Shown one piece after another: positions 12,101-52,573 of a DNA stretch of 64,000 nt. Each line of letters begins with the position of its first letter. The first letter of the stretch is position 1. The translations under genes and the position numbers were made by a program. The stretch spans positions 11,656,001 to 11,720,000 of the forward strand of contig OZ176050.1 in NCBI GenBank assembly GCA_964247055.1. Reading direction: 5' to 3'. The notes beneath the pieces were generated by a model. That model was not told where the DNA came from, made no database searches, and was given only the letters and a program-made list of their open reading frames with translations. This DNA is from Paragordius varius (lineage: Eukaryota > Animalia > Nematomorpha).

Positions 12101-15100
12101 CCTCCGTTGATTTTCAAGAGTAACCAACTGACATATAAAAGAGTAATTTTATTAAAATTATGTTAAATTTATATAAAAATAAATTTATTTAAAAAAAAAA
12201 TTATTTTATTAAAATTTATATTAGTCAATTATGAAAAAAGAGAATAAAATTAAATTGAATTTTATTATAATATATTACCTCTTGGTCCATAATACTGTTT
12301 AGCACCTCAAGTTTTTGTTGCAATTCCATTGCCTCAGAATCTTGAAGATCTATCATGAATTAAAGTTTTTTAAAAATTAAAATTATTATTTGCAGCAAAA
12401 AAATGTGGAATAAATATAACAAATATATCAAAGAATATATATTGGTTGAATAATTTATTTATTTATGAGATTATAATGTGCATTTTTTTGACTATAAATA
12501 AAAAAGCTAAAATAACCAAAAAATTTAAAGAAATGGATTTGGAAAATCCCAGGCCTTATCACCAAAAACAGAGTTTTACAATTTTTTTTATTCGTAAAAA
12601 CCAAATTAAACCAAACATTTATGCAATTCATTTTTATTTAAAAAATTGCTAAATTCAATGTAAAAAATTGACAATCTGTCAAAAACAATAAACGGGGATT
12701 TTTTTAGCGTTATTAACCAATTTTATTTTTTCCTTTCTCTGCAGCAATAAACATAAGAATGTCATATCTAATTTTTCCACTTATTTTATGTTTTCAAATG
12801 GGATTTTTTATAAGTTTAATAGGAATGGGAATAAAATTTATTTTATTATTACTATATAATGGAAAAAAATTTACTCCGGCAAAATTTTTCTGCCCGAAGA
12901 TTTCAAATGTAATAATTTTATTAGTTGAGTTTGTAAAATAAAAAATTAATTTAATTGACATTAACAACTCCATTATATTGAATAACGGCTTAAGTAAATC
13001 TATGTATAATTTAATAAACATCACACCAAAACAAACTATCAAAATTTCACTAATTTTCAAAAAATTTATCAAATAATGATAAATCTACCCTACCCTAAAT
13101 AATCACAAACTAATGATCTATATAAATAATCATTAAACAGACAGAAAAAACAAAAAGACTAAAACCTAATATATTTTAAGGGTTCGATTCGCATCTTTAA
13201 AAATTGCAAAATAAATTCTGGGCTAAAAAACAAAATAATAATATTTATTTATACTATTACGTTTAAAGTATAGTAGTATAAATTTCATCAGATAAAAATG
13301 AGATAAAAATCAAATAAATAAGTATTATTATTATAATTGTTTTGATGGAGTTAATTTTGTTTTTTATGTATAGTATTCACCAACATATCTCAATACAATA
13401 AGCGCCGGAATATCAAGATCAAAAAGTCTAATCCTAGACACAATGGTGAAGATGGCCTACCATATCAAAAAAGAAGACCGATGTTAAGATGGCTGGGTAC
13501 TGTAAATAAGGAACCGGTTAGAATTATAAGGGTATGAAAGAAATAGCATGAGAAAGAGACAAGTGGAGAGACCTCGTCATTTTATTTTCCAAGAAGTCAA
13601 GCTTGACCTACGAATTACCTACCTACCTTTTACATCCACAACATTCACAAAGACTAATATAGTTGTTTTTTAATAAATTACATTACACCTCCGACCATAT
13701 ACATAAACGAATCAATTGTCTCCATTAAAACAATTATCATCAAGATAACCTTTTATATTTTTTTCTCTTTTTTATTAGATATTGTTTATACTACTATAAA
13801 CGAAATATAATAAATAAATCTTATAATTATATAAATTTCGCTCTTTAGCCCAGAATATATTTTACAAATATGTTTCATTTTGCCCATAAACTTATAAAAA
13901 GTATACTAAATTCAATATTTGAAAAAAAAATTAAAAAAAATACCATAAGGAAGTTCGAAATGAGCATCAATGTAAACTTTGTTTTTAGTTGGCGTTCGGG
14001 TTCCCACCACGATTCCGTCTTTCATCTCAACTTCGCTATCCATACTTATCCATTTACCATTGCTTGTCTTTTGAAAAACAATTTTGATTATAAAAAATTA
14101 AAACCAATAATATATATTAATTAATAAATTGGTAATTTTACAACATTTTTTAAAAACAAGGTGTAAATCGGAATAAAAAGTTTATATCTGCTTTAATATG
14201 TTTTAAATCAAGAGTCGCCTGCTATTATAATAGGAAATAATTTTTTTGCTTATGGTTACATCATATTTTAATTACCAATGGCCAAATAAACCCTAAGAAG
14301 GATGCACACATTTTTGATGAAGAAAAATAAAAAAAGGCAAACTATTCTTCTAAAGTTTAGAGAGTTATAGAAAAATACCTATATTTTATGATTTAGAACT
14401 TTAAATTATACAATAAGAAAATTACACGAATTATGCTTGCCAAAATGTCAACGAGAATATTCTATGTAGTAATAATAATTTGAGTTTTGGTAAATTTTTA
14501 AAACTAAGCAATATCCAGAATATCTGATACATGTAGTATATTTTACAATGGATAAAAATTATAATGAAAAACTAAAATGAAAGAAAAATAATTAACATAA
14601 ACTTGATTAGTGTGGGGTAGATGAGCTAAAGGCATCCAATGAGTCCCCAATAAACGATCCCATAACATACCTTTGTTCCAAAGTTCTATCACCAACCCTA
14701 TATCGGTGCGGTTTGTTTCGCTAATATAAATTTGAAAAATGTTTTTATTGAATGATATGTCAAAAAATTATCATATTCTTGAATTTGTAAAATATTTATT
14801 AATAAAGGCTGATTTTCTATAGTTTTTAAATATAATCATATAAGATAAAATAAAAAATATTTTATATGAAAAAAGAATCATACAACATAAAATCTTGTTC
14901 CCAGCATGGATTGAGCCCTTTAAGAGCAACCGTAGTTGACTTAACACTTTGAAGTTTTATGGTAACATATGTATAAAAGTCATCTAAATATGATTAATAC
15001 AATAGATAGAAATATTTTGATTGAATTATTATTATTTACACACCTGGATTCCCAACAAGCCGAGCGCATTTCACTAAAAATATAAATAAAATTTATTCAT

Positions 15101-15159
15101 TGGAAGAATTCCAGAAAATAAATATTCAAAAAATTACCGGTAACACAAAGTAAAGACAT
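6148..15159 (-). CDS. unc-13: Unc-13/Munc13 homolog, 5' part (C2A domain plus long low-complexity linker). Exons: 15159-15138, 15073-15044, 14983-14884, 14720-14603, 14067-13944, 12349-12279, 12127-12079, 11963-11612, 11315-10933, 10740-10555, 10051-9778, 8880-8684, 7401-7232, 6275-6148. The gene probably continues past the left edge.
   Basis: Spliced translation [82 protein letters not shown]...[29 protein letters not shown]...[11 protein letters not shown] matches the Munc13 C2A domain and the invertebrate post-C2A motif. The first five exons are 22/30/100/118/124 nt, as recalled for UNC13 genes. All junctions are GT-AG with consistent phases. C1, C2B and MUN exons were not found in the window. 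Confidence 0.9.
9065..9114. repeat. (TA)n microsatellite; similar tracts near 1477-1516, 27817-27850 and 60144-60177
   Basis: Direct reading of the sequence. Confidence 0.9.
9482..9725. mobile_element. Tc1/mariner-type MITE in an unc-13 intron
   Basis: CAGTC…GACTG termini with TA on both sides and ~90-bp near-perfect inverted arms. Confidence 0.75.
13390..13627 (+). mobile_element. Degenerate 3' end of an RTE/CR1-like LINE in an unc-13 intron
   Basis: [14 protein letters not shown] and ERDKWRDLV remnants are followed by a short (ACCT)n tail. Confidence 0.5.
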
Positions 15160-15282
15160 TATCGGCTTTTAGTAAATTCTATCACATAACTTAAAGCAAA
15201 ATATAACGCTCTCATAAAATATTGATTTCTTCAACTTAGTGAAAAAACATACGGTTCTGGGCGTGAATAAAAAAACAATCGC
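15160..15282. promoter_or_regulatory. 123-bp spacer between the divergent unc-13 and IMP3 start codons; candidate bidirectional promoter or overlapping 5' leaders
   Basis: unc-13 ATG at 15159 (-) and IMP3 ATG at 15283 (+). The regulatory role is inferred from position only. Confidence 0.5.
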
Positions 15283-16961
15283 ATGGTTCGCAAACTCAGG
15301 TATCATGAGAAGAAATTGCTGAAAAAGGTTGATTTTATATCATGGGAATGTGATAATAATTTGCACGAACTTAAAGTCATGAAAAAATTTGGAGTTAAAA
15401 AACGGGAAGATTATACAAAGTATTTCAAAAAATAATTCTAGATACAATGGACTATCAAGGGAAATTCGTGAATTAGCCCGAAAGATTAAAGATTTAGATA
15501 ATAACGATCCATATAAAGCACAAACCACAGCTCATTTATTAGATAAATTGTAAATTTTATTTTATATCATTTTTATTTTTTGCTTAACTATATTATTTGC
15601 CCAGATATGAAATGGGACTTGTGCCTCATAAAAATACCCTTGAAGTTGCCGATAAAATTAATGCTTCATCTTTTTGCAAGTACTTTTGTCAAATATAAAT
15701 TTTAAGACGAAGGCTACCATGCGTTATGGTTTTAATGAAAATGGCTGAACGGGTTAAATACGCCACTCAATTCGTTGAACATGGACGTAATTCAATAATT
15801 TTTAACATAAACTTTTGCTAAAAAGTTGTTAATACTATAATATATTTTTTAATTTGGATTATATTGTTTATAATTTTTGTTTTTGTAACTATTATTTTTA
15901 AATGCCTTGCTCGCTATATTTTTGGATATCCGCAATTTATATTTTAAGCTGTTTAAGTCTATATTGATTTATATAAATTATATAGATGTTCGGATAGGAA
16001 CCGAATTAATACTAGATCCAGCATATTTTGTCACAAGGTATATACTCTTTCTTATTAAGGCATATAAAAATTTATTAAGATATGTACAATTATTTATAAT
16101 ATAGTATATTAAATTATTTTATTATGCAATTTTTTATGTAGATTGTATATATTGTTTAGGAGTATGGAAGATTTTATAACATGGACAGAATCATCCAAAA
16201 TTAAAAGACATGTTTTGGAGTACAATGAGATGGTTTATTTATTTAATATATTTTATTCCTTGTTATTATATGTTTCAATTGGGTATCGTACAAGTGACAA
16301 AGAATTAACACCATTTGTAAAAAACTCTTTGCAAATTTCAGTTCAATCATATATGTAGGGAATTTTGTTACAAACTAAATGTCTATTCGTTGCAAACATT
16401 CGCAGACCTGAACAATTATTGTGCACTTATTTGTTGCATTGTATGGAAATTAATTTAACATCCAGTGAATATATTCTCCAAGAGAATTTTCCTTTTTGTA
16501 AATACCATACATTTTGACATTTAAATTTCCGTTAGCCATAAGTTTGAATAATTATTCCCAACTTTCAATCCTTCTAAATATTTGTTTTTGAGTTATTGCA
16601 GTTGTGGCTCAATTATCCGCAGACAGGATCTTTCAAGGGAGTCCTTTCGATTTTTTCCATTATAGTTATTAAGCGTAATGGCTCTAACATTGAGCCTTAA
16701 TGTAGGACAGCATTAGAGAGTTAACTAGTTGGGAAATCCATGGCAGCATATGCTCACTATATGGGAAATCAAATTTCATCTTATGCAACAAATGTGACAA
16801 GAAACGTTCACATCATCTGAAATTAATGAATACGTTATGTTATGTATAAATTTTAAGATTGGTTATTATTGCAAGCGTATCATAATCAAACCATATGCAT
16901 TTTTTCTATATAATTTTTATTTATTTTATTTATTTAGCAAGATGATTTTGATGGCCTATGA
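15283..16961 (+). CDS. IMP3: U3 snoRNP protein IMP3. Exons: 15283-15419, 15442-15549, 15605-15679, 15707-15786, 15986-16037, 16160-16232, 16938-16961.
   Basis: Spliced translation [22 protein letters not shown]...[24 protein letters not shown]...ASSFCKRRLPCVM...FVEHGHVRIG...[39 protein letters not shown] is colinear with IMP3 from start to stop. Confidence 0.95.
16380..16650 (-). mobile_element. Possible decayed CR1/Jockey-type RT fragment inside IMP3 intron 6
   Basis: The remnant WL..../[10 protein letters not shown] resembles the post-YADD 'WxLxLNxxKCxV' motif; frameshifted. Confidence 0.35.
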
Positions 16962-17729
16962 ATCACAATTAACATTACCTATGATTTGTTATATAATACT
17001 CATTATTAAAATAAATTGGAAATGGATATTGCTCTAAATACAATTTATAACAAAAAAATTTGATTTTTTGGTTATACATTATGCTGGTTTATTCCCATAA
17101 TTGTTTGGTCAATTGGCAAAACAGTAGTCTATGGGTAAATGTTGAAATTAACCAATTTCTTTCTTTTGTTTATTTAGTTATGCACAAAATTTGTATTATA
17201 ACACACGCTACTGTAAATTTTTAGCGAGCAATTATGAGAATCACCATAATTTGAAACTGTAATATAAGAATTTCCAAAGTAATTTATTGGCCTCTATATA
17301 AAATTTTTATATACCCTTTTTGGCTTTGATTGGTAACAATCCTATTTTTTCCAAATAAAATTCTAAGAGGCACCCAAGTTGTAACATAAGAATGATTTTT
17401 TCGAAGTAAATAGGAATAATAATTTTATATCCAGCTATACTTTGCATTCCTTAATTCAGATTGATAATTTTTTATATAATAAAACTACATCTTAGGATAA
17501 ATAAACCAAATCATTCTTAAACGAGATATGGTTTTTTATATAAACATTTCCGATTTGATTTTTATAATCTATATACCTATAAAAATGGAAAGTGGTGACT
17601 TTGTGATCTGTTTCCGAAAAACCGGTAAACCCATTTAAATCCAAATGTCGAAAATATATAATCATTAATGAATGCCCAGACATAGCTTCGCCCTTAGGCC
17701 CCCAGTTCGGGCCTAACCCGTGAAAAAAC

Positions 17730-28641: not shown

Positions 28642-31600
28642 ATGGTTATTTTATCTAGGGTACGTTAATATATTTGATATTTTTAAAATTTTATATATCA
28701 CTTTATGACCTTTTAGATTAGGTTTATCCTTTAAAACCATTTAATTAAAAATGTGCTTTTAGCAGCCTTTTAGGCGCATGATACAAAAAATATAAAATTG
28801 CAAAAAAAATTCTTATAAGGCAAATAAATGTATATTATGGTTAAGTAATATAAATAATTTAACTAAAGGTGTTAAAATTACGATTTACCTGAAAATTTTG
28901 CATATTCATTGATTTTATTAGCTATTCGTTTTTATGTTTTGAGGCTGCCTATAGAAGTTAATTACTGTAAACCAAAGTTTTTTTTATCTATTACAGGAGA
29001 AGAGGGTTTGATAAAAAAATTTTAACCAAAACAACTTTTAAAACAGTAGTTTGTTTACTACATTATTGAAAAAGTCCTTAAGTGTTATATAGTTATCAAA
29101 AGATAAGCAATAGCTTTTCTAACCCCAGTTATATCATGTAATTTTACCAATCTTTACGTCTATTTAAAATGTGTAAAATTTTTACAACTATACATTATGT
29201 TTACAAGCTAAAATTTAATTGTATTCGTGAAGGCCTAAGGAATTTGTCATTATAATATAAATATTGTTTGTACTTTGTCCCACATATTTAGGTCATCCAT
29301 ATTTTTCTTGCTATAATCTAAAACGGACACCGTAATTTAAATTTAAATACATATGCAATAAGTTTATCCAATCTTTTTATCAAATAATCTCCAAACTTTT
29401 TTGAAAGTAATAATTAGAGTTTTTTAAATTTTTACTTAACTTTTCACTCGAATTAAATATAAGAAAGAGGCTAGTCACTTTCTTTCATAAATTTCATGAT
29501 TTATTAATATTTTTACGAAATCAGGGTGAATACATCTGGATAATACCGGATGATCGTTCAAGCCATAGCAGTGAATACAGCGTTCCCATGGGAGCCCGGG
29601 TTAAAATGGTTGAAGGCTCCAAAATACTAGTTCAAGATGATGAAGATAGGGTATGACAAAAAGAGAAAAGAAAATTAATTTTTTTCTAGTTTTATAGTGT
29701 ACCACTTTAAATTAAAATAATTCTATAAATCCACTCAAAAATATGTCCAAAAACTGTTTTTAACCCTAAATTTTCACGATTTCAACATAAAAGTTAAATG
29801 TTTAAGAATTCTTGCTGTCTACTTATTTTATTTAAAATTATTTTGGATAGGAATATTATATTGGGACAAATAGTCGTATACGAGTTATGCATTCCACTTC
29901 GGTTGAAGGCGTCGAAGATATGATAAGTTTGGGGGATCTGCATGAGGCTGGAATCCTGAGAAATTTGCTCATACGCTATAAACATGGATTTATTTATGTA
30001 TGGTTTTTACGATCTATTTAAATACATACGTTTTAAAATTTGTGTTTAGGTCTTAGGGATAATTGACACCTCACTATTTAATTAATTTTTTTCAATTTTA
30101 AGCTGTAGTTTTGATTTTAAATTATCTAATTTTTGAATTTTCTAGAGAAAAGTAACATTAAATATTTTTTATAGTTAAGCGTATGTTGTTTAACGTCCAT
30201 TTATTCACATTGGTTAAAATAATTTTGGTAATTCAAAAAAATTGGAATTAAAATCAAAGTGTTATTTTTATTAATACACTTAAAGTCAAAAACTTAACTT
30301 GCTAACCGCATCCTAAAGGCAAATTTTGTTTTAATTTTTTATGTTAAATATCCATATATCAATCATTTTATCTTTTATGATAGAGTTATACGGGCTCTAT
30401 TCTCGTTGCCGTTAACCCTTATCAAGTTTTGCCTCTTTACACACCCGAACATGTTAAATTATATCGCCAAAGAAAAATTGGCGAATTACCTCCCCACATA
30501 TTTGCCATAGCTGATAACTCATATTCTAGTTTATTCCGTATCGGAAATCAATGCATTATAATTAGGTCACTTTTTGTAAAATCTTAAATTGCTTGAAGTT
30601 TTAAAAAATCCAATAAAATCTTTTTAAATATTTGTGTTATTTTGACAAGAAATTTAACCTTTTTACCTTTTTTAGCGGTGAAAGTGGAGCGGGTAAAACG
30701 GAAAGTACTAAGATTGTTTTACAATTTTTGGCGGCAATCAGTGGTCAACATTCATGGATTGAACAACAGATCTTGGAATCTAACCCGATTCTTGAAGGTT
30801 TTCATGATTACATGCAATAGTTGCAAATAATTATTGCATAATATTTTTGGTTATCCTAACTATAGATATTTTTATGATTTTTTCATTTATTAGTCATAAT
30901 CCTCGTTATAAGTATGAATGACATTTCAATCAATAAGTGTTTATATATTTAATATTTTTGCATATATAGCTTTTGGAAACGCTAAAACTATCCGCAACGA
31001 TAACTCTAGTCGATTTGGCAAATACATTGATATCCAATTTAATCGTTCGGGTAGCATTGAAGGAGCCAAAATTGAACAATATTTGTTGGAAAAATCGCGA
31101 ATCGTCCATCAAGTAATTTTTATAATTTTATTATATTGGAAGAAATGTTCTAATTTATAAATTATTTTAAATCAATTTGTAAATTTCGATAAATATTATT
31201 AATTTTTTTGGAAAAAGTTATCTAATTATAGTTTAGATTTTTGACAATCAATATATATTCAAGACTATCTTTTAGGTCTTAAAACAATATTTTCTTTATT
31301 TTTTAGGCTCAAGACGAACGGAATTACCATGTCTTTTATTGTATGCTAGCAGGAATGTCAGAAGATGAAAGACGTAAGCTCTATCTAACCAAAGCTGGAG
31401 ATTACTTTTATTTAACACAGGTCATTAAATTAAAAATATAATTATAATAATATCGTTTTAAATATTTAAATAGGAATATATCTAAGATTATCCAGAATAG
31501 TTTTGCAAATTATTTTATATATTTAATTATTTTATTTTATAGGGTGGTGGTTCATTAGTATGTGAAGGTCGATCAGATTCAGTCGAATATTTTAACATAA

Positions 31601-34600
31601 TTTCTGCCATGAAAGTCCTTTTGTTTAAGGAGGAAGAAATCTATGATATATTTCAATTACTTGCAATCATTCTCCATTTCGGCAATCTCAACTACAAAGG
31701 TTTTTTTTCATAATATTTTATAAATTTATTTTATATATTTGATTTTATTTATCATAAATTATTTATTTATAGGAACAACCATAAAAAATTTGGATGCCAG
31801 TGAAATCGCTAACCCAAATACCCTTGACCCCTTATCAAAATTATTAATGGTTATAATTTGAATAATTTGAATTCTCGTAAAATTTATTAAATTGAACTAT
31901 ATCCAAAATTTTCGAGACATGGTAGTAATATTTTAATGGAATATTAAAAACAAAAGAAAATAATAATGATAAAATATAATTAAAACAAAATTTGAAAATA
32001 AATAATCATAAATTATGATAAAAAAAAATGTAAAGTGTGATGTCCATGTGGTTCTTTTTTGTTTTTTTCTTGGAGTGACAAATATTTTAAATAATCTGTA
32101 CCCCTTAAGAAGTCTTTAGTGACCATGTTCATTTTTATATCTCCTCTCTTCTGTTGATAAGGTGGACACTATTTGAATGGATGAAACCATAAATATTTAA
32201 CTCATGTAATTAATTTTAAAAATTAGTATGTTTGATTTTTTTGCGCCTTATAAAACATAGATTATTTAATTTGGGAAACATTATCTGTTTTAACACTAAT
32301 AATCTTTGTAGCTTATTTTTTTCGAGCTAAATATGCATTAAGATCATGGCTAAATATTACATATATTTATGCCAAATTTGTTGCAAACATCAGTAAAACC
32401 AATATTATATTTATCAATAAATTTTCGTTAAATTAAACAAAAACATTTAATGACACTACTATTAAGGTAAAACCCAATGAATTAAATCGTGCCTTAACTA
32501 CCCGTACATTAATTACGGGAGGTGAAACTCTGGTAGCCACTCTCAGTGCAGATAAATCGATGGATGTTAGAGACGCGTTTTGCAAGGGTGTATATGGGCG
32601 ATTATTCGTGTACATTGTTGAAAAGATCAATGAAGCCATCAAAGCACCTCATGAAACGATCAATGGTCATATCTTACACGGTAGCCCTAAAAATGGGGGC
32701 CAATACGAATTTAAAAAGTATTTTTAAACTAAAAATGTATGCAGCAGAATTTAAATATTTTTAAGTGTTGAAAAAAAAAGCCTGAACTTTAATTATATTA
32801 AAATTTTATGGTAAACATCAATCACAGATCAAAGAAATTATATAAGGATTTTTTCCGTTTCGTATAAGCAAAATTAAAACCTTTCAGAAATGTAACTTTT
32901 AATATGTTATTAAAGTGTTTGGTCAACTTGCTTCTTTGTTTAATTTAAAAATCAGTTATGTCCTATTTTTTGACTTTTATACCACTTGATACTATCTATT
33001 TTAGTAGAGATTTTTAAAAATCAAATATATATATTCTTGTTTTAGTAATCATGTCAATGGACATTCCAATTCAAATATTATAAATGGGCATCAACACACA
33101 AATGCTATAACGGTAAATCATGGCGATGGATTGGCCCATTTAGGCGTTTTAGATATCTTTGGGTTCGAAAATTTCGAATTTAACAGGTTCTAATACATGT
33201 TAATCTGTATATTTAAGTTTTAAAATATTTTAGTATTTTGTAATTTTTTGTTTTGCTTTATAATCTAAAATTTACAAAATAGCTTCGAACAATTTTGCAT
33301 CAATTATGCCAATGAGAACTTGCAACAATTCTTCATACGTCACATCTTTAAATTAGAACAGGTAACTTTTTTTTTGTTTTCTATCAAATAACAAATTTTT
33401 TAATAATATAATTTTAGTAAACACAAAAATTTGTAATATTTTACTAATTATATATTTTCATACAATACCTTCATCAAAATTTTGTGCGCCATTATAGGAG
33501 GAATATAATCACGAGGGTATAGATTGGCAACACATAGATTTCATAGATAATCAAGAGACTTTGGACTTGATTGCGGGTCGACCGCTCCATATTGTAGCGT
33601 TGATTGATGAGGAAAGTCGATTTCCAAAAGGCACGGACCTTACATTACTGGATAAATTGAATCATACCCATAGGAAACATGCTTCATATCTAGAACCTAA
33701 AAGTGGAAACGCTAAATATTTTGGCATAAACCATTTTGCCGGTCAAGTCTTGTATGATATTCAAGGTAGATATAATATACATACGTGAATTATCATATCT
33801 ATGGTTGCTATAATCTTAATTTTTAATGTTTTACATGTCTTTAAATCATAAAGTTCAGACTCATTTATATAGTTAAACTATTATCAAAATATGGTTGCTT
33901 ATTAGCATGTTTTATTGTCAAACATCATATTAGAGTTTTTATACATTATGTTATATAACAGAGCTTATTCAAATTTTAATATGGAGTCTATAGTTTATGC
34001 ATAGTAACAGAAGCTTATTACATATTTACACTTTATATGCGTATAGGTTTTATTGAAAAAAATCGAGATACCTTTAGTGCGGATCTATTAAGTCTAATCT
34101 ACAGTACAAACAATCGATTTCTCCACTCTCTATTCCACAAAGAACGGATGATGGTAATATGCTAATTTTTATCCCTTAATTATTTAATCATTCAAAATTG
34201 CAAATATAATTAGGGACCTGAAACACGTAAAAAATCGCCCACGCTCGGTTTGCAGTTTAAAAAATCTTTGGATTGTCTCATGAAAACGCTAGAAACTTGT
34301 CAACCATTTTTTATCCGGTGCATAAAACCTAACGATGCTAAGAGGCCTGGGGTATGTCTTCATTATTATTTAATGTTTTTTCTTCGGTTTATAATAACCT
34401 TAATAATTATTCTACATAAAAACATAATCATAAGGCAATATTTTAAACATGAGCTTAAATATTATTATTATATGTCATGGCTAGATTTTTGATCGGGAAC
34501 TTGTTGTCAAACAATTGCGATATTCGGGGATGATGGAAACTATTCGCATTCGCCGAAATGGTTATCCCATTCGACATGGATTTAATGATTTTTTTGCTCG

Positions 34601-37600
34601 TTACAAACATTTAGTTACAGTTGCTTCCCTTAAACATGCCGGCGTAGCACACATCCTTAAACCCACTAATACTAAACAGCGGTTGGTTATAATTTTTTAT
34701 TTTTCTATTATTTTACCATCCATAACACTAGTCGACAAATTTGGACATTTTTGAGCACCACCATTCAAACTTTTAAATTATGACTAATTTTAGTGTTTTA
34801 AAACCGAATGTGAAAAATTTTTTGATCCCGCCAATCAGAATGAAATATTATAGATTTTTCAATTTTCCAAAAACCAGAGAACATCGAGAGAAAATTCAAT
34901 ATAACTTTATAATAAAATGTTATTATATTATAAATTTAATATCATTTAATAAAGCGTTTTAAACTCTATCTTTTGAATATAAATATGTCATTTAAATAAG
35001 AAAAAAATAGTGCGGACTTAAACGTCAATATTTAGTCTTTTTCTTTCAAGTGAATTTTTAATACGTATAAATAATTTTTTAAAAAATACTAAAAATAACA
35101 TTCTATGGTTTGAACCTTCGGCTTTTAGATAGGCTATATTTTTTTGTTAGTTTTCGTTCTTTCGAGTACTTATTAAGCTTTTTTTCTTGAGCTGGTTCTT
35201 ACAAAAAATCTTTTATTTATACCTAGTGGATATACTTTATTTTTTAAAATTATTGGTTGTTTTGTATTTTTAATTTCAGATGGATGTTGTGTAGCCACTT
35301 TTAGTAGAATTTACTGTTATGGGGTTGGACCATTTGTATTTACCTAATTTATATTCAATTTAATTGTATTTATCTAACTTTATTCTGTAAATTGATTATG
35401 ACATGTCAATTTGCCTGGATTTTGCTTGCAAGTCTCTCTTATCGGACTTTACGATTGCTTATTGTTGTCTTTGCCACATCTGGCATAATTATTGGATCGC
35501 TTGGGGGATATGCAGAGCTTGTGCAGCCGCCCGGATCTATCACACTATACATAAGCCCCTTTTAGATTTTTAATACTTTGGCTCTTAGCTTGTTTAGTAT
35601 CATATTTAATGACTAGAATTTTGTTATTCATGCATGGAATATTACTTGTATCGACTTGTTCGTTTGAATATTTAAACATATGTACATGAGGAATGATTGT
35701 TATTTTTAAATTATATACAAATTTAAAAATTAAATTTCGGAAAAATCCTATTGGTGGCCTCAATTTTCTTTTTTGTTTTGGCCTTTCCATGCCATTAGGT
35801 ATCAAAAAATGCAAAAATAATGGGGTGGTGCAAAACCTTGTTGAGCAGTGTAATTAAACATACCTGTGTATTTGCAATCAATTTTAAACCATAAAATTTT
35901 TTATTTAGGCATCAAGAAGCATTTATGGATGATTACAAAGTGGCTTCACGCATTATTTGTTCCACTGTTTTGGGATCAAAAGCTGATTTCCAAATTGGCC
36001 ATTCAAAGGTGTTTTTGAAAGTAAGGTGTTTTATGGTATCTATTTTAAAGGATTAAATACTTAATTCAAAATAGTATTTTTTACATTTAGAGAAATCTTG
36101 CGCATATATTAAATTAAATTTACACATGATATTTTTAGATAATGTTATCGCGCATGTTCTGAATATCAAACTAAAAAAAACTATTTCTATATTAATTAGG
36201 ATTGCCATGACCTGTATCTGGAACAAGCAAGAGAACGAGCTTTAACACAAAAAATAATCTTGATTCAAAAACACGTTAAGGGTTGGTTACAACGACGTCG
36301 TTTCCAACAAATTAAATGTGCCGCTTTCATCATTCAAAAATATTATAGAGGTTTTTGGTTCTTTTTATACTTTTAATTTTTCGAAATTTTATTTTGATAA
36401 ACTGTATACCGTCTAATTTTAATATAAATCTTTTATTATCAAAATAGGATATCTCTATCGGAAAAGGTATCAAGCGATGCGGATGGGTTTTGCACGATTA
36501 CAGGCTTTAATTAAAGCTCGACGTATCTATGAACAATATATGTCAACTAGGCAGTTTATGATATTACTCCAAGCACAATGCAGGTTTTTTATGCATAAAA
36601 TTTTGAATCCACGATACAAAAATTAATAATTTATCAAACTTTCATAAATTATTACATATATGTATAGAGGATATTTGGTTCGCAAGGAGACTCGTAAAAA
36701 ATTAGAAGAAGCCCGTAAAGCAGCCAAGTTACGACAACAAGAAGCCAAAGTTATTAAATATTTTGCAAATAAACAGTGTTTAAAATTTTTGAAAAATGGC
36801 AATCTTTTTTAGCCGGTTAAATTTTTTGCATTATTTATCCGAGGGCCGTCTTATTTAGAGTGGTATCATTTTTAATCAATTTAAAGACACAAAACGTAAT
36901 TATTCTTTATGTATTAACGAAAATTATATTTTGTTAAAAAATAAAGTTTAATTTTTGGCAATCTAAAAGAGGTATTTGTTGGTATGTATGAACTATTTAA
37001 TTCGATAGTCCGTTCTTAGAACCCAAACATTTTTCTTTTAACAATACTTTAGCGATTAAATAAACAATATGACAATGGTACCCGTTTTGACAAGTCAAAT
37101 AAGGGCCAAAATAGGCATGTTAATCAATTTTCGGACAAAAAGCAAAGGACCAACTCAGCCCATCTCAATACCGGATTCGATGAACAAGCCACGATTGAAG
37201 AATTATTCGGAAATTTAGATTCCAATAAAAATTCTGATAACAACGCCCCTAACCAACCTGACGGTGAAAGACTTGTTGAGTCAGAGGGAGGAAATAACAT
37301 AAAGAGCGGAAAATTTGCTGCTATAAAAAACATTTTGGAAGAAAAAAGGAGTCGTGATCCCCAAAGCTTAACTCAATCTGGCGCTTCAACAAATGAACCT
37401 GGCAATATAGTACAACCCGTTTCTAATAAGGCTTTTTCTGATGGGCCGACAGCTTTTAAAGTAATTGCGTAATAAATATGTGTTTGTATTTGAGATTACT
37501 AATGTTTCTTTTGAAAACTTCAATAATATATAATTTTTAGGACTTGGAGGATGGAAGGGACCAAGCTATAAAAGCTTCAAGTACCCAACCGAATACGGCT

Positions 37601-40600
37601 TCGGAAAAAACACTTTTATACCAATATATGCAAGAATTGGATGATTTGACCCTAAATATTAATAATAATAATGGCGATAACAAAATTTTAAATAATTATA
37701 ATAAAGATAACACTATACGTAATGATTGGAGTAGCTTAGAAAATTTGGTAGGTGAATTTAAATTTCCAAAATTTGCTACTACGTATTTTCAAGGTAATGT
37801 GGGCCATACATTTTTCCGAGGTGAACTGAGACAGCCTTTGTTGCCCCTCAAAAATCCTGGTAAATGTTTTATATCTATAAATTGCCTATCTAAACTAAGT
37901 TTTAATTAGTTTTTCATCAAAGTTAATTTTGTCTATACTCTGTGTTACTTAATCTTGTTTTTTTTAGTTTCCTATGTTTAAATTTTTTTAAAAATCAACT
38001 TTTCCTTGAATTTTATCCTGTATAAATGTTACCAGAAGGATTCTCTAATCAAAAAATTGTGAGTAGTTTTAATGTGATTTAAATAAAATAGGTGATATTT
38101 TGGCCGCATTGGATGTCTGGGTTATGATACTACGCTTTATGGGTGATATGCCAGAACCGAATTTATCAACAGATCCCAACAACACTTTAGATAAAACTAG
38201 TCATCGAATAAATGATTATTCGAATGGAAAAAATAGTAGGAGATCTTCAGCCATTTATACCGATGATAATATGTCAGTCATGAATAAAATTTACAATACA
38301 CTCTCTAGGACAGCGGTATATAGAATTTGATTTTTTTTAATCTTTTTTATCGATTTTCTTCTTCAAAATATTTTTATGTAAAACGCAAACGAATTTTTGA
38401 TTGAAAGTTGTGGCATAGTTTAACCTTGAAACCTTTTTAAAAACAGATTGATTTTATTTCGAAACTATATATGGATTTGAATTAATTTATCGTCCATATA
38501 TTTGAAAGGATGTCGATTTGAATAAAATATATAAATTGTTTTTAACTAACAAATTTATGCATATATTTTTTATAATTTTAGGGTAAAACGATTGCAGCCG
38601 ATAGAACGTTTGGTTTAGATCCCAAAGATTATCAAGCTATTAGCAATGGTTCACATCATGCGCTCAATAATAGTAAAAATAATTGTAACAAAAAATTCAC
38701 AAATCACAATTATGAAAATTCTATGGTAGAGGATTTGCATTCAAACACTCAAACTGGTATTCATGCACAGACAACCAATAATTTGCGGAAGAAATTGATT
38801 AGTTTAACGCTAAAACGAAAATCTAAAATGGCCCCATTAGGTAGTTATTTATATACTTTACGAAATTCTCTCTCGAATAAATTTTGTTAAATTATAATTT
38901 TCGAATATTTGAATACTTTCACTTCCCTCTTAGGTCTAATAAAATCTGATCGACCAGCGCTTAAACAACCACACCAAAACGGATATCATGATAATTCTCA
39001 TCGAAACGAAACTACCCCTTATAATGGCCCGTCAGATATGAATCATAATATGACTAATGGAGATGTTTTGGGTTATGATGACCCTGCCGAGGACCTTATA
39101 GCTTCCATGAAAAACAAACCGCTTTCAAATTTGGACAAACTGCATTTCATAATTGGTATAGGGAATTACTATGTGTTACTAAATATTTTGGTTGATAATA
39201 TATGCATAATAATATTTTTTTGCCATAAGCGTTGTTTCGGAAATACATATTATAGCACAACTTTCAGATTAGGTGGGTAAATATTAGGATTCCGGATTTG
39301 GAGTTGTTTTCTTTCCACGTAAATCCCACCCGTTACAATTAACAATCTTTACATTGTTCTGTTATAAGGATTAAAGGCCATTTTTATATTATCATTATAG
39401 GAAACGAGTGGTCGTCCCTTTCTTCTTTTGCCATCAACATTCATGTTTTTAATAGTTATAGAATGGGTCGCGTCTTGCAAAATTAAGCCTTTTAAACAAT
39501 TTTTTACTTAAACGCCAAATATCGTAATTGTTATGCATACAAGGCCCTTTTTTAGTGAAATTTAACAATAGCGCCCTAAATTATTTTAAAGATATCATTT
39601 ATTTTAACTATATCATTTTACACATGATATATATTTTTACCCAATAAAATACCCAGGAAACGGCATTTTGAGACCCAAACTCCGAGACGAAATATTTTGC
39701 CAAATTTGTAAACAGCTAACATCAAACCCTAATCCGGACTCCAGTCGAATACGTGGATGGATTTTACTTTCTTTGTGCATTGGTTGTTTCCCGCCCTCAC
39801 ATACGTTCGAAAATTATCTCAAAAATTTCTTGTACCAAAATCACAAAAGTATACAAGCCGCAAATGCTAATATAAGGTAAAGTGTCAATTTATATCTTTT
39901 AAATATTTTCCTGGCTTACTAAATTATCCAATTTTATAAATCAAACGATGTAATTTACTTTCAATATAGATATAGTTATATATTTTCTTTATTTTTTTCA
40001 AGCATTTAATTCCATTCCTTATATAAAATTGGATATATCAATTTTTAATTAAATGACAAATTAACTTTGTCATACATATAGTAGATGTCAAGAAAATGGG
40101 AAAGTTGCGCGTATGATTGGCATAGATTTTGCTGCACGATGCTTACATCGCTTACAAAGAACGCTTAAGAATGGTCCCAGGTCTCAGCCACCCTGCTGGT
40201 TAGAACTACAAGCCGCAAAGGCCTCCGTGGCTGCAGTTTATAAAAATTTCAATACAAGTATGTGTCTCGAGCTAAAAATGAGTTTATTAATTATTATGAA
40301 AAGTTTAAAAAGCAAGCGATGAAAAGTTTGGCAAGCACTAAAACGCTACAACTTTGATATTTAGTTTTTTTGTCAACACATATTTTAAAAATAAACTCAA
40401 ATCAGTATATTATATACAAATTATCCTATGTTATGAGCTACTTTTATAAAAGATTCCTTAATAATGAATACCATCGCTATTTATTTAAAAAGAATTTTAT
40501 ATGCTAAAACTTACATATTGTAAGTATCATTAAGTCAAAGATTAACTAAAGACTAATTATTGTTTTATTATTTTAATGATTTTACATTGTAGATTATTAT

Positions 40601-43600
40601 TATATATAATGGACATTTGCTCAAGATATAAAAAAATGTACATGATACACATTACATGCCTTGTATATTTTCTTTTTGAGGATAAATCGAACTACTGGAC
40701 TGAAATTAAATTAAATTTATCCATTATTTAAATACCTAATTTTTGATTTTTATGCTTATATGTATGTTTTTAGCAAATGCAAACTCAATCCTAATTGAAC
40801 GCGAACCTCCAATAGTATTACCTGTAACGTGTATGGATGGGCGAACCGAAAACTTGCCTGCAGATTGCGCCACAACTGCAAGAGAATTATGTAGATTACT
40901 ATCGCTCCGATTAGGTCTAATTCCAAAGCCAGAAACTATGAATGCTCATCGAAAGGTAGGACATCATTGATTTTTTAATTTATAGTTGATTAAAAAATAA
41001 AAAGCGGAATTACAACTCAAAATTTTTAATATTTAAAATCAATAAGAAGGTATTATCTTATAACAAAAGCGGAGCCAGAAAGATATATCTATTTGTGTGT
41101 TAACAAAAAATATTATGTTTAATTATTTTTGTAACAATTAATAATTATATATCTTTTACAACTTTGAATAATGATAGAAATTGAAATCAAATTCGACAAA
41201 TGTTCAATCACCACCATCCTTTATTACGAATGGGGGTGCTTTTGGGTTTTCACTGTACGTTGCCCTATTCGATAAGGTCAGTAGTTTAGGGGATGGGAAT
41301 GATCATGTTATGGATGCCATAAGTCAATGTGAACAATATGCAAAAGAAACGGGCGCATCCGAACGCAATGCCCCTTGGCGACTATTTTTCCGCAAAGAAG
41401 TTTTTGTCCCTTGGAGAGGTTTTTTTTCAATTTGTTACATTTATCTAAGAAAATAATTATTTACGTAAAAAAAACATTTATCTTTATGCATCACAAGTAA
41501 AAAATAACTAATTTACATATAGTATCTATCAATAACACCAAAAAAGGTTCATAATGAAGTCCAGATTAAACCAATTACCATTTTTTGACTGTTTTTTAAT
41601 TTTTTATTACATTTATATTTTTCATTAACTATGAAACAGAAGATGAAGAATTGGATGAAAACTATGGCATAATTCCCAGATCCATTAAACAAAGTCGAGA
41701 TGCCATACGCGATTTAGTGTATCAACAAATTGTTAGAGGAATCAAATTTGGTACTTTCTTATCAAATAGATTTTCATTTAAAAATGTCATTGAATCTCTT
41801 ATTTAGTTCATAGCTTTAATCAATTTTCCAAAATTGGCCCATCTTTTGCATTATATATGCAATTTATGTAGGTGAATACAGGTGTGAAAAAGAGGAAGAT
41901 TTAGCCCATGTAGCCCTTCTCCAATACTATGTGGATGTGGCTTATTTATTACATGAGTCTGAGAATAAAACATCCATGGCCAAAAATGGTAGTAAACATT
42001 CATCAGTTACCATAGTCAATACAGAACTTGATCCATCACAACTTTTAACGTTACTCCCCTCATTCATTCCCGATTATTATTTGAACCGGGATGGGGCCAT
42101 AGAACATTGGATTCGACAAGTTATGCTTGTTTATCGCAAAAAGTCTGTCCCACTTTCGAATGATACACCTTTGTCTAAGGTTTTACAAATAACTGATATA
42201 TATATATGTTTAATTGTGCAACATAAATTTATGTAATAATTTAGAAAAATATCTCTTTTTTTGGAATATAAATAAAATATCAACAAATACTTTATAATAA
42301 ACATTAATAGTAAAATATTGTAAAAAAGATTATTTTTTACAACAATTTTAATAAAAATTTATATATTAGCAAAAAAATTTTTAGAAATATTAAATATACG
42401 AGCTTTACAAATTTAACCCGCTAATCAGCTAGGATAAGAACCGATGTATGTATTCTATTGTTCATAATAGGTCAAAGATGAACTCATTATGTTTGCCAAG
42501 TTTAAATGGCCCCTATTGTTTTCACGTTTCTACGAAGCTAGTCTCATGATAGGTACAAGCTTAGCTACGAGCACCTTTGCACACCATATACCACGTAATC
42601 AAGACATTATTGTGGCTGTTAATTGGACAGGTTTTTATGCCGTGGATGATCAGGAGAGAGTTTTATTGGAACTTTCATTCCCTGAAATTGTTAGAGTCCG
42701 CTATTTCGCCCCAAACATGATTGCATCCACCTCCTATGGACACCAATCAAATAAAAATTGCACTCTCGCTGGAGAAGAGGGCGCGTCCCAAGCGAGAAGT
42801 ATGGATGACAAAGATAATGTAACAGATATGAAACGACGAAAAGAGCATCAGAAAAATGGATTTTACGATAGGTAATATGGTTAATTAGCAAGTGCAACTT
42901 TTATCTATAAAATAGGGTCAATTATGAGTGCACTACAATGCCATTGTAAACTATCGTAAACGAATATTATTCATAAACTACGGGCAGAAAAAATGGATTT
43001 ATAATTATAATTTTTTTGATACTTAGTAACCAATAATTATTGTTGAGAAACGTTTGTTCATGAAAAATTAATTTGTTTTTTAAGACCACAATTCATTCTA
43101 CCCTATGCTGTATTGTGCATTCTTACGGTGAGACAAGAACTGCTCGTTTTCCGATGTTCCGGTGCTAAAGATGTGTGCGAACTTATGAATTATTTTTTGG
43201 ATGGATTGAGAAAAAGGACGCGCTACGCTATTGCTGTTAAAGATTTTTTCGGTTATTTATATTTTATTCATATTTTTTTATTTTATGAAACTTTTTTTGC
43301 TAATGTGAGTAAATACTTTTATCTAAATATTACATTTTAGGTAAGGAGAATATAAAAATATATAATATTTAACCAATGGTTATTGTTTCATGTTAGAAAA
43401 CGATTCCACTTTTCTTAATTTTCAACGTGGAGAAACTATTCTGTTAGAAAAACCGTATGGATCCGCTGTTATGGCTCAAAACCAAACAGTCAACGGTGCT
43501 AAAGTTTGGCTAACTGGTATATTTCTATTTAAGGAATTATTTTCTATACTATATGGCTTACATTAATTAACAATTTGTTTTTATCTCCCCTAAAAGGTTC

Positions 43601-46600
43601 TACCACAAACAGTAAAAATAAGGGTGATTTTCCATCCGATCTCGTTTATTTAGTTCCGACTTTGACGGTTCCAGACCCACAAACTATTTCCGCCATAGCG
43701 GAACATTGTATTAATGCAGATGCACCTGGGCGTTTCGCTCAACACATGGATAGATTAAATTTAAGTTCTTCCAATGATAAATCACCAAACACCACTTATC
43801 CAAATGCATCATCCGTTGCCCTTAAAGATGCCATTCAACGGCTTTTTCTAAAACAAGAATTTCAAGGCATTTCATCTCAAATATCTGGCGCTAATATGAG
43901 CGAGGACTGTTTACCACTTTTCGACAATCCCGACTACTTTGCAACTAGTAATAATAATAGTTTGTACGGGAATGAATTGTATGGTGAAGCACTGGGCGGA
44001 AATTTCAATTCGGGTTTAGGGCATTACACTTACACTAATATGGGACTACCCGGCGGCGGTGCTAATAATGGTAAAAGACAGAATGTCGCAATAAATGGGA
44101 TGGCCTCACCCCCGGCACATCCGTACGATCTTAGGAAATTTGCTGCAGAACATTTCCGTAACAGTGAAAAGTTTATCATAATTTTTTTATGTCTCTTATC
44201 TTCTAATTTATATTGTTGGGGAAACATGATTATTTTATATGTATTTTATGAGTGAGTTGCGTGTTTGATATGTAAAGTGTATTTTTTGATAAATAAAGCA
44301 GAAAGGGTTAACCAATGAATTAAATTTTTTTAGATTTTAAATAAATTCCCACTTTGGCACATTAATATAGACATACCTGCTATATAAGTTTTCCACAATA
44401 TTTTTTGTTTAAGATTATTTGGACATTTATTAGTCAAAATAATTTTATGATTATTAATAAGACAATGATTTCCATTGCAGGTTAAGTGTGAAACGAAGCA
44501 TTGGACAAGCCATAACTAACACATTAAACCGGAAAAACCCACTCAAAACCTTGTTAAATCACAGTAACAACAATCCCTCCTCCATAGACTTGGCAAATGG
44601 GACAGACTTTAATTCGATTAATCCATCTGGTATGGTTAATTCTACAGAAGACAATGATGATTTTGCCAATAACAATAATGGCAAAATTGAATGCCTATGG
44701 CGACACAGCAAAGAACCATTAAAACTTCCTTTGTTACGAAAGTTACAGGGTAGAGAGCAGTTTTGTCACTTGGCTTGTCAAATATCGTTGGCTATTGCAA
44801 AGTATATGGGTGATCAACCTATGCGCCGCAAATTAACCATAAATGGATCCGGACCTCCGTACAGTAATGGTATTTTAACTTCATCACCTCATAACTCACT
44901 CGTATCCAATAATGGTAAGTTATATGGTTCTGGTGCTTTGGGAAATGGGACAAATTTAAATGGGTTAACCAATAATGGTACACCTTTACACTCCATAGAC
45001 TTGACTGATATGATCTTTGAACCGGCTATTAAACATGTGAGTTATCAATTATAAAAAGTTATTATCAAATTTGAGTATCTAATTAAGCATAGTTAAAATA
45101 TAAGTGGATTACAACAACTATTATATTATCTTGCACCCTGATATAGGAAATTTTGCGCGATGAAGTATATTGCCAATTGATTAAGCAACTGACACAAAAC
45201 CCCAACAAGTATGCATAGTTTTATGGCATAAAAATCATTTTTCCCTTATTATGATATAAATTAACATTTATATAGACTGAAACGTTGCAAACACTATGAT
45301 TTATTTTATTTTTAATCTATTTATAACGAAGTTATTGTTTTGCTAATTAAATAATTAATAATATTTCCAAAGATGACGGCATAATATATTACCCATAATT
45401 TATATTTTTAAATTTATTTTTACTTCATTCAGATCAAGCGAGGAAAAAGGTTGGGAACTTATGTGGCTTTCAACCGGCTGTTTTCCTTGTAGTCGAATAA
45501 TGTTGCCTGAAATAACGGATTTTTTGAGAAGTAGCAGCTCCTCGCAAATGATATCACCTCCCGCAACAAATAATGGTTTTAAATATTTTATATATTAAAT
45601 ATACTTAACATTATAGCTATAGGACAATATCGCAATTTATATTATATTTACAGTTGTCACCTTGAATATTGTGATGGCGTATAATTTAAGATCATCTTTG
45701 ATTTTTTTACTGAAAAAAAAAATATGTCCCTTTAGGCATGAGTGTTCCTAATCTGGCCCTAAAACGCGACTGTTTTATACGCCTTCAAAAAACGCTAAAA
45801 GTCGGATGTCGAAAATATCCTCCACATCCGGTCGAAGTTGAAGCCATTCAAAGGAAAACTACCCAAATATTTCACAAGGTTTACTTTCCCGATGATACTG
45901 AACAAGCCTTTGAAGTGGATTCTGGTATGTGATTGGCTCTATGAAATATAACATCCACAAATTATAACTGTTACATTTTTATTTCAATTTGTAGGTACGA
46001 AAGCGACAGAATTTTGTTTCCACATATCACGTAGGCTTGGTCTCCAATCTCCCCAAGGATTTAGCTTGTTTGTTAAAATTGCTGATAAGGTCATCAGTGT
46101 TCCAGACCAAGATTTTTTCTTTGATTTTGTCCGACACCTAACGGATTGGATCAAAAAGACATGTCCCATATCAAGCGGTAATTTTGCGGGTCATATAACA
46201 CGAAATGGTGAACATATTGGACCTTTCGGGACAAACGGTTCCAATTCATCCCTCAATTATAGCCATAATAATAGTCAAACCAATGTGAATTCTACCCTAA
46301 CCTACCAAATCTTTTTTATGCGAAAATTATGGCTAAATGTTGTACCTGGAGTGGATCGAAATGCCGATCTTATCTTCCATTACCATCAAGTATGTAAAAT
46401 CAATAATGAATACTAGGGATATTTGTTGTTTTTATTAGTTTAAAATTTATAGGTATTAAAAAAATTGATTTGAACATTGTCTAAAAATTTTATTATATTA
46501 TTGAATTCATTTATATAAAGGAAGTGCCCAAATATTTACGTGGTTATCACAAATGTAACCCTGAAGATGCCAAATCTTTAGCAGCCTTAATTTATCGAGT

Positions 46601-47952
46601 CAAGTTTAATTCCGATCCATCGTATATCACAAGTCTTGCTATGTTTAGCAAAATCATAAAGGTATGTGATTAAGTTTAGATATATGATATGATCGAAATT
46701 AAAGCATTATATATGATTATTCATAATTTTTTTAATTTGGATATTAGGAGCTTGTCCCCGGACACTTACTTAAGATCACCCATGATTCCTATCATCAATC
46801 TGCGCTTGAGGATTGGAGAAAAGGCATATCTCATTATTATTCACTTACAACTGGTTCGGCTAGCAGAGGCATTCCACCATTAAGTCCGGATGATGCAAAG
46901 ATTGAATTCCTTAAAATCATATATAAATGGCCAACTTTCGGCTCCGCGTTTTTCGAAGTCAAAGTAATGATTCGTTTATCAATGTAACACTTTCTCTTTT
47001 AATGATTCTTTAAAATATCATATAATATAATTAATTTTTCCAGTTATGATACGGTTCAAGAATAAACATGTAGGTGCTGTATTCGATATAAATTATATTT
47101 GATTTATAACAATAAGAACACTGTTTTCGGAATATATAATTTCTATTACGTGGTTTCTATTCTATCAATTTATGCCCAGAACATTTTAAAATTCACATTA
47201 TTTGTTAAATATCTTTATCATGTTCCTCACTTGGTAAAAAAGATTTTGCATTTAGCAGGAAAATACAAATTTTTAATCTACTATGTTTTAAACAGCAAAC
47301 AACTGAACCCAATCTCCCAGACTACATCATAATAGCCATTAACAAGAATGGATTAACACTTTTAGACCCGCATTCAAAAGATACATTAGCCACGTTCCCT
47401 TTCACTCAAATATCAAATTGGAGTAGTGGGAATACCTATTTCCACATTACCATAGGCAATATGGTTCAAGGAAGCAAATTACTTTGTGAAACATCTTTGG
47501 TAAGTAAAAAATTTGTTTGTGCCCTTAATTAAGAATTGTTAAACCTTTTTAAACGATTCATCCCGCAATACTTGGGCTTAAAATTCTAAGTTTATCATGA
47601 TTATGTGAGTACATGGTGTATAAGTTAAGTTTTTTACTTTCTACAAGCCCTTCTGAAACTGGTATCTGCTGTCAGTTCAAATTATGATCAGCCAAAACTA
47701 CGGAATCGTTAGGACCTAATTAGCCCTCCATCAAATTACTGATTTTTATTTATAATAATAAATTTTTTATTTATAATAATGATACTTTGATTGCAGGGGT
47801 ATAAAATGGATGATCTGCTTACCTCATACATTGGACTCATGTTAAGTGCCATGGGAAAACAACAACATCAACTACAAAATCAATTTCAACAGCCAACTGG
47901 ATTGCAACAAAGGCAACAACCTATTATGCATATAGCAGCTAATGGCTTCTAA
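28642..47952 (+). CDS. MYO7A: Unconventional myosin VIIa (crinkled-like): motor, about 4 IQ motifs, MyTH4-FERM, SH3, MyTH4-FERM; multi-exon and complete
   Basis: First exon MVILSR (28642-28659), then GEYIW..., [23 protein letters not shown]-loop [38 protein letters not shown] and IQ motifs. The tail has MyTH4 ([14 protein letters not shown]; [14 protein letters not shown]), FERM ([10 protein letters not shown]; [13 protein letters not shown]; [21 protein letters not shown]; [12 protein letters not shown]) and the terminal [12 protein letters not shown]. Stop TAA at 47950-47952. Confidence 0.95.
34726..35850. mobile_element. Degenerate CAC…GTG / TAA-flanked element in a myosin intron
   Basis: Left end CACTAGTCGACAAA…GCACCACC versus right end GGTGGTGC…TTGTTGAGCAGTG, with TAA on both sides. 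Internal similarity is weak. Confidence 0.4.
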
Positions 47953-51900: not shown

Positions 51901-52573
51901 CATGTACTCTATCCAAACAATATATTCCACCCATAGAAGCTGAATCCAACCTTGAAATAGGTGACAGCGAAATTCAAAAAGTACCAAAGTTTACCTACCT
52001 TGGTGATACCATTTCCGCTCAAGGAGGTTCATCTGAAGCCATCAAAAATCGCATAAGAATTGGTTGGGGTAGATATAACCAATATAAATACATATTTACC
52101 AACAAACACAGATCTACAAAAACAAAAAACAAAATATACCTAATTGGCGTTAGACCTACTATAAATGCTTGCGAAACATGGCAAATAAGTAAAACACACG
52201 AAAATATGCTGATAATATGGAACAAAGAATGATAAATACATTTAAGCGAACAATCTCTCAGGATAAACAAATCCTATCAATTTCAAAATATATTCAAATC
52301 CGTGGACTCGGCTATTACGGTCACATACAAAGATTAGATATCGATAATTGGATTAAAAATATAACAAACCTTAAGCCAAACAAACAAAACAGAGTTGGTC
52401 GTCCAGCAATAACATGGGATAAAAACATTACCCAAGACCTACAGGCCAAAAACATAAAAGCCGGGGACTGGTTAAACAAAAAATCCTTCAATGCAATGAT
52501 CAAACACCTAAACCCCGTCACGACGGGATTCCAAGGGACCCCTTGACAACAGATATCTATCTATCTATCTATC
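48935..52573 (+). mobile_element. Full-length RTE-clade non-LTR retrotransposon, inactivated by stops and frameshifts
   Basis: 15-bp TSD TATCCTTGATTACTG (48920-48934; 52574-52588) and a (TATC)n tail. APE motifs: TYNIGSL, DICCLQETR, YAPQ, GGDLNEHVG. RT motifs: KAAGPS, YRPIKLL, QFAFRQG, GLHQGSVLSPLLF, YADD. C-terminus: LGYYGHIQR...GRPAITW. Confidence 0.95.

Follow-up and report, generated by a model that had tools for sequence, protein, structure and literature searches.

A probable 22 nt spliceosomal intron at an ancestral position in the IMP3 gene of a horsehair worm

Ultra-short introns in animals and other eukaryotes

Introns shorter than about 30 bp were once thought to be absent from animals (PMC13644364, Mol Biol Evol, September 2026). 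Among 51 animal genomes they have been reported only in the myxobolid Myxozoa and in Dicyema, both of which are very small parasites whose genomes are compact; the trait has been tied to genome reduction. The median intron length is 22–27 bp in Henneguya salminicola, Thelohanellus kitauei and Myxobolus rasmusseni, and in the myxobolids and Dicyema the donor site is reduced to GTa and the acceptor to AG, a few A residues lying just upstream of it (PMC13644364). Tiny introns are also found in ciliates, with lengths of 15–16 nt in Stentor and about 25 nt in Paramecium (as cited in PMC13644364). The background on ultra-short introns given in the initial annotation of the DNA described here, in which dicyemids were the animal example, agrees with that study, which adds the myxobolid Myxozoa. 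Introns of the Bigelowiella nucleomorph are 18–21 nt long, and the human introns regarded as ultra-short measure about 43–65 nt, some of them being spliced with SPF45/RBM17 replacing U2AF. An earlier paper on Dicyema Pax6 and Zic reportedly mentions short introns too, and we know of no animal model system that splices an intron of 22 nt. No mention of intron length in Nematomorpha was found in the literature searched.

We analysed a window of 64 000 nt from the genome of the horsehair worm Paragordius varius (Nematomorpha; contig OZ176050.1), and all coordinates given below are positions within this window. The first intron of its IMP3 gene (IMP3 intron 1) is very probably a further case of a known, very rare kind, the animal intron shorter than 30 nt. 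Like the introns of myxobolid Myxozoa, the tiny introns of this gene are GT–AG introns of less than 30 nt that occupy conserved positions between conserved exons, with a donor that is approximately GTA, a polypyrimidine tract that is slight or absent, and A residues shortly before the AG. In the myxobolids, however, tiny introns constitute the bulk of all introns and the parasite genomes are compact (about 20–200 Mb; PMC13644364), whereas here two tiny introns share a gene with introns of 55–705 nt, in a different lineage and in a window that contains transposon remains and a 133 nt myosin intron. Dicyema japonicum, a dicyemid and thus a bilaterian parasite, likewise has spliceosomal introns of less than 30 nt with weak splice-site motifs, but dicyemids are highly reduced in both body and genome and their introns are uniformly short, while the horsehair worm has retained long introns alongside the tiny ones of one gene. 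In ciliates and the Bigelowiella nucleomorph a canonical spliceosome removes introns of 15–30 nt whose branch A precedes the AG by a few bases, although these are unicellular, non-animal systems in which intron length is near-uniform. The human ultra-short introns also resemble the present ones in being short and in having a truncated polypyrimidine tract, and could plausibly serve as a model of how the 3′ site is recognized independently of U2AF, but they are twice as long.

The IMP3 gene and its first intron

IMP3 is a U3 snoRNP protein that is required for 18S rRNA processing, and its gene is an essential ribosome-assembly gene. The exons were traced downstream by homology, one exon at a time and with no joined sequence, and the resulting model, on the + strand, has seven exons with 549 nt of coding sequence and a product of 182 aa (184 in human and 183 in yeast IMP3). 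Exon 1 (15283–15419) runs from M1 through the second base of codon K46 and corresponds to residues 1–47 of human IMP3. It is followed by intron 1 (15420–15441; 22 nt, phase 2), exon 2 (15442–15549; human residues 48–82), intron 2 (15550–15604; 55 nt, phase 2), exon 3 (15605–15679; human residues 84–107), intron 3 (15680–15706; 27 nt, phase 2) and exon 4 (15707–15786; IMP3 residues 109–134), and the split codons at introns 2 and 3 provide residues 83 and 108 respectively. The remainder of the gene consists of intron 4 (15787–15985; 199 nt, phase 1), intron 5 (16038–16159; 122 nt, phase 2) and intron 6 (16233–16937; 705 nt, phase 0), which separate exons 5 (15986–16037) and 6 (16160–16232), both assigned by homology, and exon 7 (16938–16961), which encodes QDDFDGL and ends with the stop codon. 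An AATAAA polyadenylation signal lies at 17010–17015 (+), 49 nt 3′ of the stop. All six introns have GT–AG ends, none of the twelve splice dinucleotides or the seven exons being damaged; the tiny introns are the first and the third, and the remaining four range from 55 to 705 nt.

Intron 1 has the sequence GTATTTCAAAAAATAATTCTAG (18 % G+C) and splits IMP3 between K46 and Y47. Its GT occupies 15420–15421 and its AG 15440–15441; cuts shifted by one base have non-canonical ends, and GT–AG is obtained solely with the 15420/15441 cut. A random stretch would be delimited by GT and AG in about 0.2 % of cases (GT occurs 5514 times and AG 5064 times in the 128 000 positions of both strands), and the 22-mer is present as a single copy in the window even when up to three mismatches are allowed. 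The frame that opens with the ATG at 15283 reads MVRKL...KKREDYTK and, if left unspliced, continues with YFKK and a TAA, forming an ORF of 50 aa (15283–15435). The 46 residues of exon 1 match residues 1–47 of human IMP3 (PDB 7mq8_LZ; phmmer E-value, 1e-14), and the 35 residues encoded by 15443–15547, in a frame shifted by one base, match human residues 48–82. Since no residue is lost or gained at the joint between exons 1 and 2, exactly 22 nt have to be removed, and joining the two exons without these 22 nt gives a continuous frame homologous to IMP3. We infer from this that the 22 nt are excised from the RNA.

Several proposals of the initial annotation are thus borne out. It had placed a 22 nt intron between REDYTK and YN, where we find both the GT–AG ends and a gapless fit to human IMP3 on either side; it had predicted that the unspliced frame would reach a TAA within five codons, and the stop follows four further codons; and it had held the length to be fixed by the adjoining conserved residues, which agrees with the gapless succession of human residues 1–47 and 48–82. 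A 27 nt intron that it listed elsewhere in the window corresponds to intron 3, whose flanking exons fit IMP3 residues 84–107 and 109–134. The length of intron 3 is divisible by three, but it contains an in-frame TAA and its removal is therefore needed as well. Everything testable supports the core of that annotation, namely a required spliceosomal intron of 22 nt belonging to a class of less than 30 nt that exists alongside long introns. As both occupy sites at which other animals carry introns of hundreds to thousands of bases, the 22 and 27 nt stretches are almost certainly true introns that lie below the usual animal size limit.

The signals within intron 1 are sparse. The donor GUAUUU agrees with the U1/U6 consensus only at GUA, and the donors of the long IMP3 introns (GTAAAT, GTAATT, GTATAT and GTTTAT) likewise match it no further than the GUA. 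A run of A residues and a UAAU are found 6–14 nt before the AG and are followed by a 4 nt UUCU tract, a composition that at 82 % A+T is not separable from chance; the terminal AG is the sole AG of the intron. The UAAU at 15433–15436 (+) is a candidate branch site, judged from the sequence only, and would put the branch A at a distance of about 6 nt from the 3′ AG. We suggest that the intron would be recognized across itself (intron definition), that the weak donor would be passed from U1 to U6, and that the branch adenosine may lie within the A-rich/UAAU stretch, 6–9 nt 5′ of the sole AG. Since the polypyrimidine tract is nearly absent (UUCU), the choice of the 3′ site is probably independent of classical U2AF65 binding.

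The removal or skipping of the 22 nt by some other route, such as excision of the IRE1 or tRNA-endonuclease type, bypassing during translation or precise elimination from somatic DNA, has to be weighed at this point, given that spliceosomal removal is deduced from the sequence and that small excisions of such a kind exist, as in XBP1, where an intron of 26 nt is excised non-spliceosomally. The local fold around intron 1 has nothing above background (z=−0.25), and this lack of a stem–loop or bulge–helix–bulge argues against the IRE1 and tRNA-endonuclease types of excision. The GT–AG ends also argue against a non-spliceosomal route, as do the orthology of this intron to ordinary spliceosomal introns of other animals and the fact that DNA contigs from two samples contain the 22 nt, both of which are described below, and we consider such routes highly improbable.

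Intron position in other animals and variation at the locus

A word search of public proteins with IMP3 exon 1 yielded, as its best 120 short matches, products of 46–81 aa from genomic contigs, and 106 of these 120 break exactly at codon 46. Sixty-one end precisely at ...REDYTK and about 45 have unrelated sequence directly after REDYTK, whereas only eight continue into YN(K/Q)LSR. A break at codon 46 in so many of these matches is characteristic of a widespread phase-2 intron. We note that ORF callers, when applied to animal contigs, reveal this conserved phase-2 IMP3 intron through ORFs that break after K46. Among the short fragments to which the length filter of this search applied, and which leave full-length IMP3 outside, nothing exceeded 87 % identity, and the exact 50 aa read-through ORF is not on record in the public protein collection.

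Seven IMP3 loci were fetched, two of which (L002 and L003) are near-identical and come from one assembly, and the exons of the window were mapped onto them singly. The codon-46 intron is 2078 nt long in Mytilus galloprovincialis (L005) and 19 310 nt in Stegodyphus mimosarum (L006), and in further animal contigs it measures 3160 nt (L001), 235 nt (L002/L003) and 2802 nt (L007). In each of these loci it interrupts a K/R codon after AA, ahead of the third base, and TAY AAY follows that codon. Intron 1 of the window interrupts codon 46 in phase 2, exactly as do these long introns of a mussel, a spider and three further animal genomes, and it is therefore a shortened ancestral intron and not an insertion. 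All six IMP3 intron positions of the window are common to L002, and that of intron 2 is common to L001, L002, L005 and L007; the counterpart of intron 3 is 552 nt long in L002/L003, and L001 has none. Human IMP3 is not known to have introns.

We therefore regard 15420–15441 as a genuine and ancient U2-type GT–AG spliceosomal intron that has shrunk to 22 nt within a functional seven-exon IMP3 gene, a reading to which we assign a probability of roughly 0.88. The ancient phase-2 intron at codon 46 would have contracted in this lineage almost to the physical minimum, and the 27 nt third intron would have contracted likewise, with the other four IMP3 introns remaining at 55–705 nt.

The DNA of a second sample bears on whether the 22 nt are real. 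Two runs of the same study that carry the same species label and derive from another sample (X4 and X5) contain contigs of 899 and 1006 nt that span 15027–15866 with about 97.6 % identity. Over the 840 aligned bases the 22 nt are identical in both short-read contigs, and no indel is listed there. In the best-matching DNA run (X1) the listed contigs end at 15371 and restart at 15461, with a depth of 8.55 across 15372–15460, and the bridging of the intron 1 region thus rests on one other sample; the gap in X1 is probably a heterozygous bubble (with SNPs at 15372 and 15417) and not missing sequence. An error of assembly or sequencing, in which the 22 nt would be miscalled or absent from the real genome, could draw on these breaks in the X1 contigs on either side of 15372–15460, but it would leave unexplained both the unaltered 22 nt of X4 and X5 and the occurrence of GT–AG at an ancestral intron position, which would not be expected of an artefact; we judge such an error extremely improbable. 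The initial annotation had itself named an assembly artefact as one of the findings that would undo its reading, and the contigs of the second sample answer that concern.

The same contigs show how the gene varies. The allelic differences listed within 15027–15866 amount to 4 in 400 coding nucleotides versus 15 in 440 non-coding nucleotides (Fisher p=0.02), and those in coding sequence comprise three synonymous changes (K>K, L>L and T>T) and one L>I. Intron 3 of the X4 allele has four substitutions and a 5 nt insertion, TTTTC, which brings it to 32 nt and lengthens its pyrimidine run, while the X5 allele has two substitutions and remains at 27 nt; GT and AG are kept in every intron 3 allele, and with this variation between preserved ends the segment behaves like an intron of a working gene. 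Such a pattern of polymorphism is typical of genes subject to purifying selection.

It bears directly on the possibility that the locus is a pseudogene, in which a 22 bp insertion and a stop-bearing 27 bp insertion broke a former IMP3 while a working copy exists elsewhere. The read-through ORF does end at 50 aa, IMP3 is known here from the 64 kb window alone, and none of the public sequencing runs on record as RNA contains the locus, all of which could be accommodated by a pseudogene. Against this, both interruptions have GT–AG ends and lie at intron positions common to other animals, the seven exons and twelve splice dinucleotides are intact, and the 22-mer is not a repeat. The allelic differences, moreover, tend to fall outside the exons, and those within them are synonymous or conservative. 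A pseudogene is expected to carry arbitrary disruptions, decayed exons and neutral substitutions, and here the frame is broken only at ancestral intron positions. We consider a pseudogene very unlikely, and the locus is better read as a functional gene with a shrunken first intron.

Contigs from four sequencing runs were compared with the locus, and all are genomic and contain the introns. X4 and X5, which contain about 20 % of the locus words, were considered as possible RNA and ruled out, their contigs being diverged genomic ones. Runs filed under four other organism labels (X6, X3, X7 and X8) contain 5–39 % of the locus words, and X6 has three contigs of 151 nt that are identical to the window at a depth of 2.5–3. 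DNA of the same species appears to be present in these differently labelled samples.

Implications, and other features of the window

The presence of 22 and 27 nt introns beside introns of up to 705 nt in one essential gene suggests that intron miniaturization is separable from genome compaction. The genome studied here, that of a horsehair worm (Nematomorpha), probably represents a third animal lineage in which introns of 21–30 nt are spliced routinely. It would be the first such lineage whose genome is bulky and rich in repeats, and also the first known in which one gene combines introns this small with others of 0.1 kb to kilobases. If so, the animal spliceosome would have no hard lower limit near 30–40 nt, and extreme intron shrinkage would be possible without compaction of the genome. 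The combination of miniature and long introns in one transcript would also provide a natural system in which to study how U1, U2 and U2AF fit onto 22 nt.

A further consequence concerns gene content. Annotation pipelines of the BRAKER/AUGUSTUS type set their minimum intron length close to or above 22–27 nt, so genes like IMP3 would be truncated or lost and estimates of gene loss inflated. Such a pipeline, BRAKER/AUGUSTUS with STAR, is described in the preprint on another nematomorph genome, that of Gordionus montsenyensis, for which a BUSCO score of 71.6 % is given (10.1101/2023.06.26.546503). If introns of this size are spliced, part of the conserved genes reported as 'missing' from such genomes could be an artefact of annotation.

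Within the window we verified two introns of less than 30 nt, both in IMP3 (22 and 27 nt) and both with lengths fixed by conserved flanks. The AATAA(A)TT(T/C)TAG ending and the bimodal intron-size regime that the initial annotation put forward are proposals at this sample of two tiny introns, IMP3 by itself having 22 and 27 nt beside 55–705 nt. The initial annotation had also listed introns of 24 and 29 nt and a probable one of 26 nt. The first two lie in an ORF at 53480–54117 (+) that is rich in Arg/Ser and Glu/Lys; this ORF has no Pfam hit and its designation as ARGLU1-like is taken from that annotation. The corresponding GT–AG stretches are present at 53737–53760 (+; 24 nt, in frame and lacking a stop) and at 53981–54009 (+; 29 nt), but neither junction is supported by Pfam, and we treat both as candidates. 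The 26 nt intron was not located in the window; one stretch of that length, 29902–29927, was considered and rejected as an intron, as it encodes the conserved myosin motif GVEDMI. A scan of ORFs alone, for GT–AG stretches of 18–35 nt that join open frames, returned 261 cases compared with 246–436 for control dinucleotide pairs, and because it does not discriminate, homology is required for calling tiny introns.

Elsewhere in the window, a myosin VII-like gene extends from about 29800 to 47400 (+), with pieces of a Myosin_head domain at 30918–34751 and a FERM_C1_MyoVII domain at 42489–42872; the one junction examined, by alignment to PDB 9dfs_D, contains an ordinary GT–AG intron of 133 nt (34352–34484). 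A Pfam search of 33 further ORFs recovered only myosin head/FERM and reverse transcriptase domains, and the unc-13-like exon has no Pfam hit. No Rfam family or tRNA was found in the window, and hence no snRNA gene. A retroelement at 50821–51933 (+) consists of two adjoining ORFs with RVT_1 matches (E-values, 4e-5 and 1.5e-18) and lies in the interval that separates the myosin VII and ARGLU1-like genes. On the − strand, the segment 19400–21500 contains ORFs with hAT transposase-like motifs, for example RWLSRGKCLKRF; two of these ORFs have no Pfam match at an E-value of 0.01. The G+C content of the window is 24–32 %, and the value of 26.9 % published for Gordionus montsenyensis is in keeping with this range.
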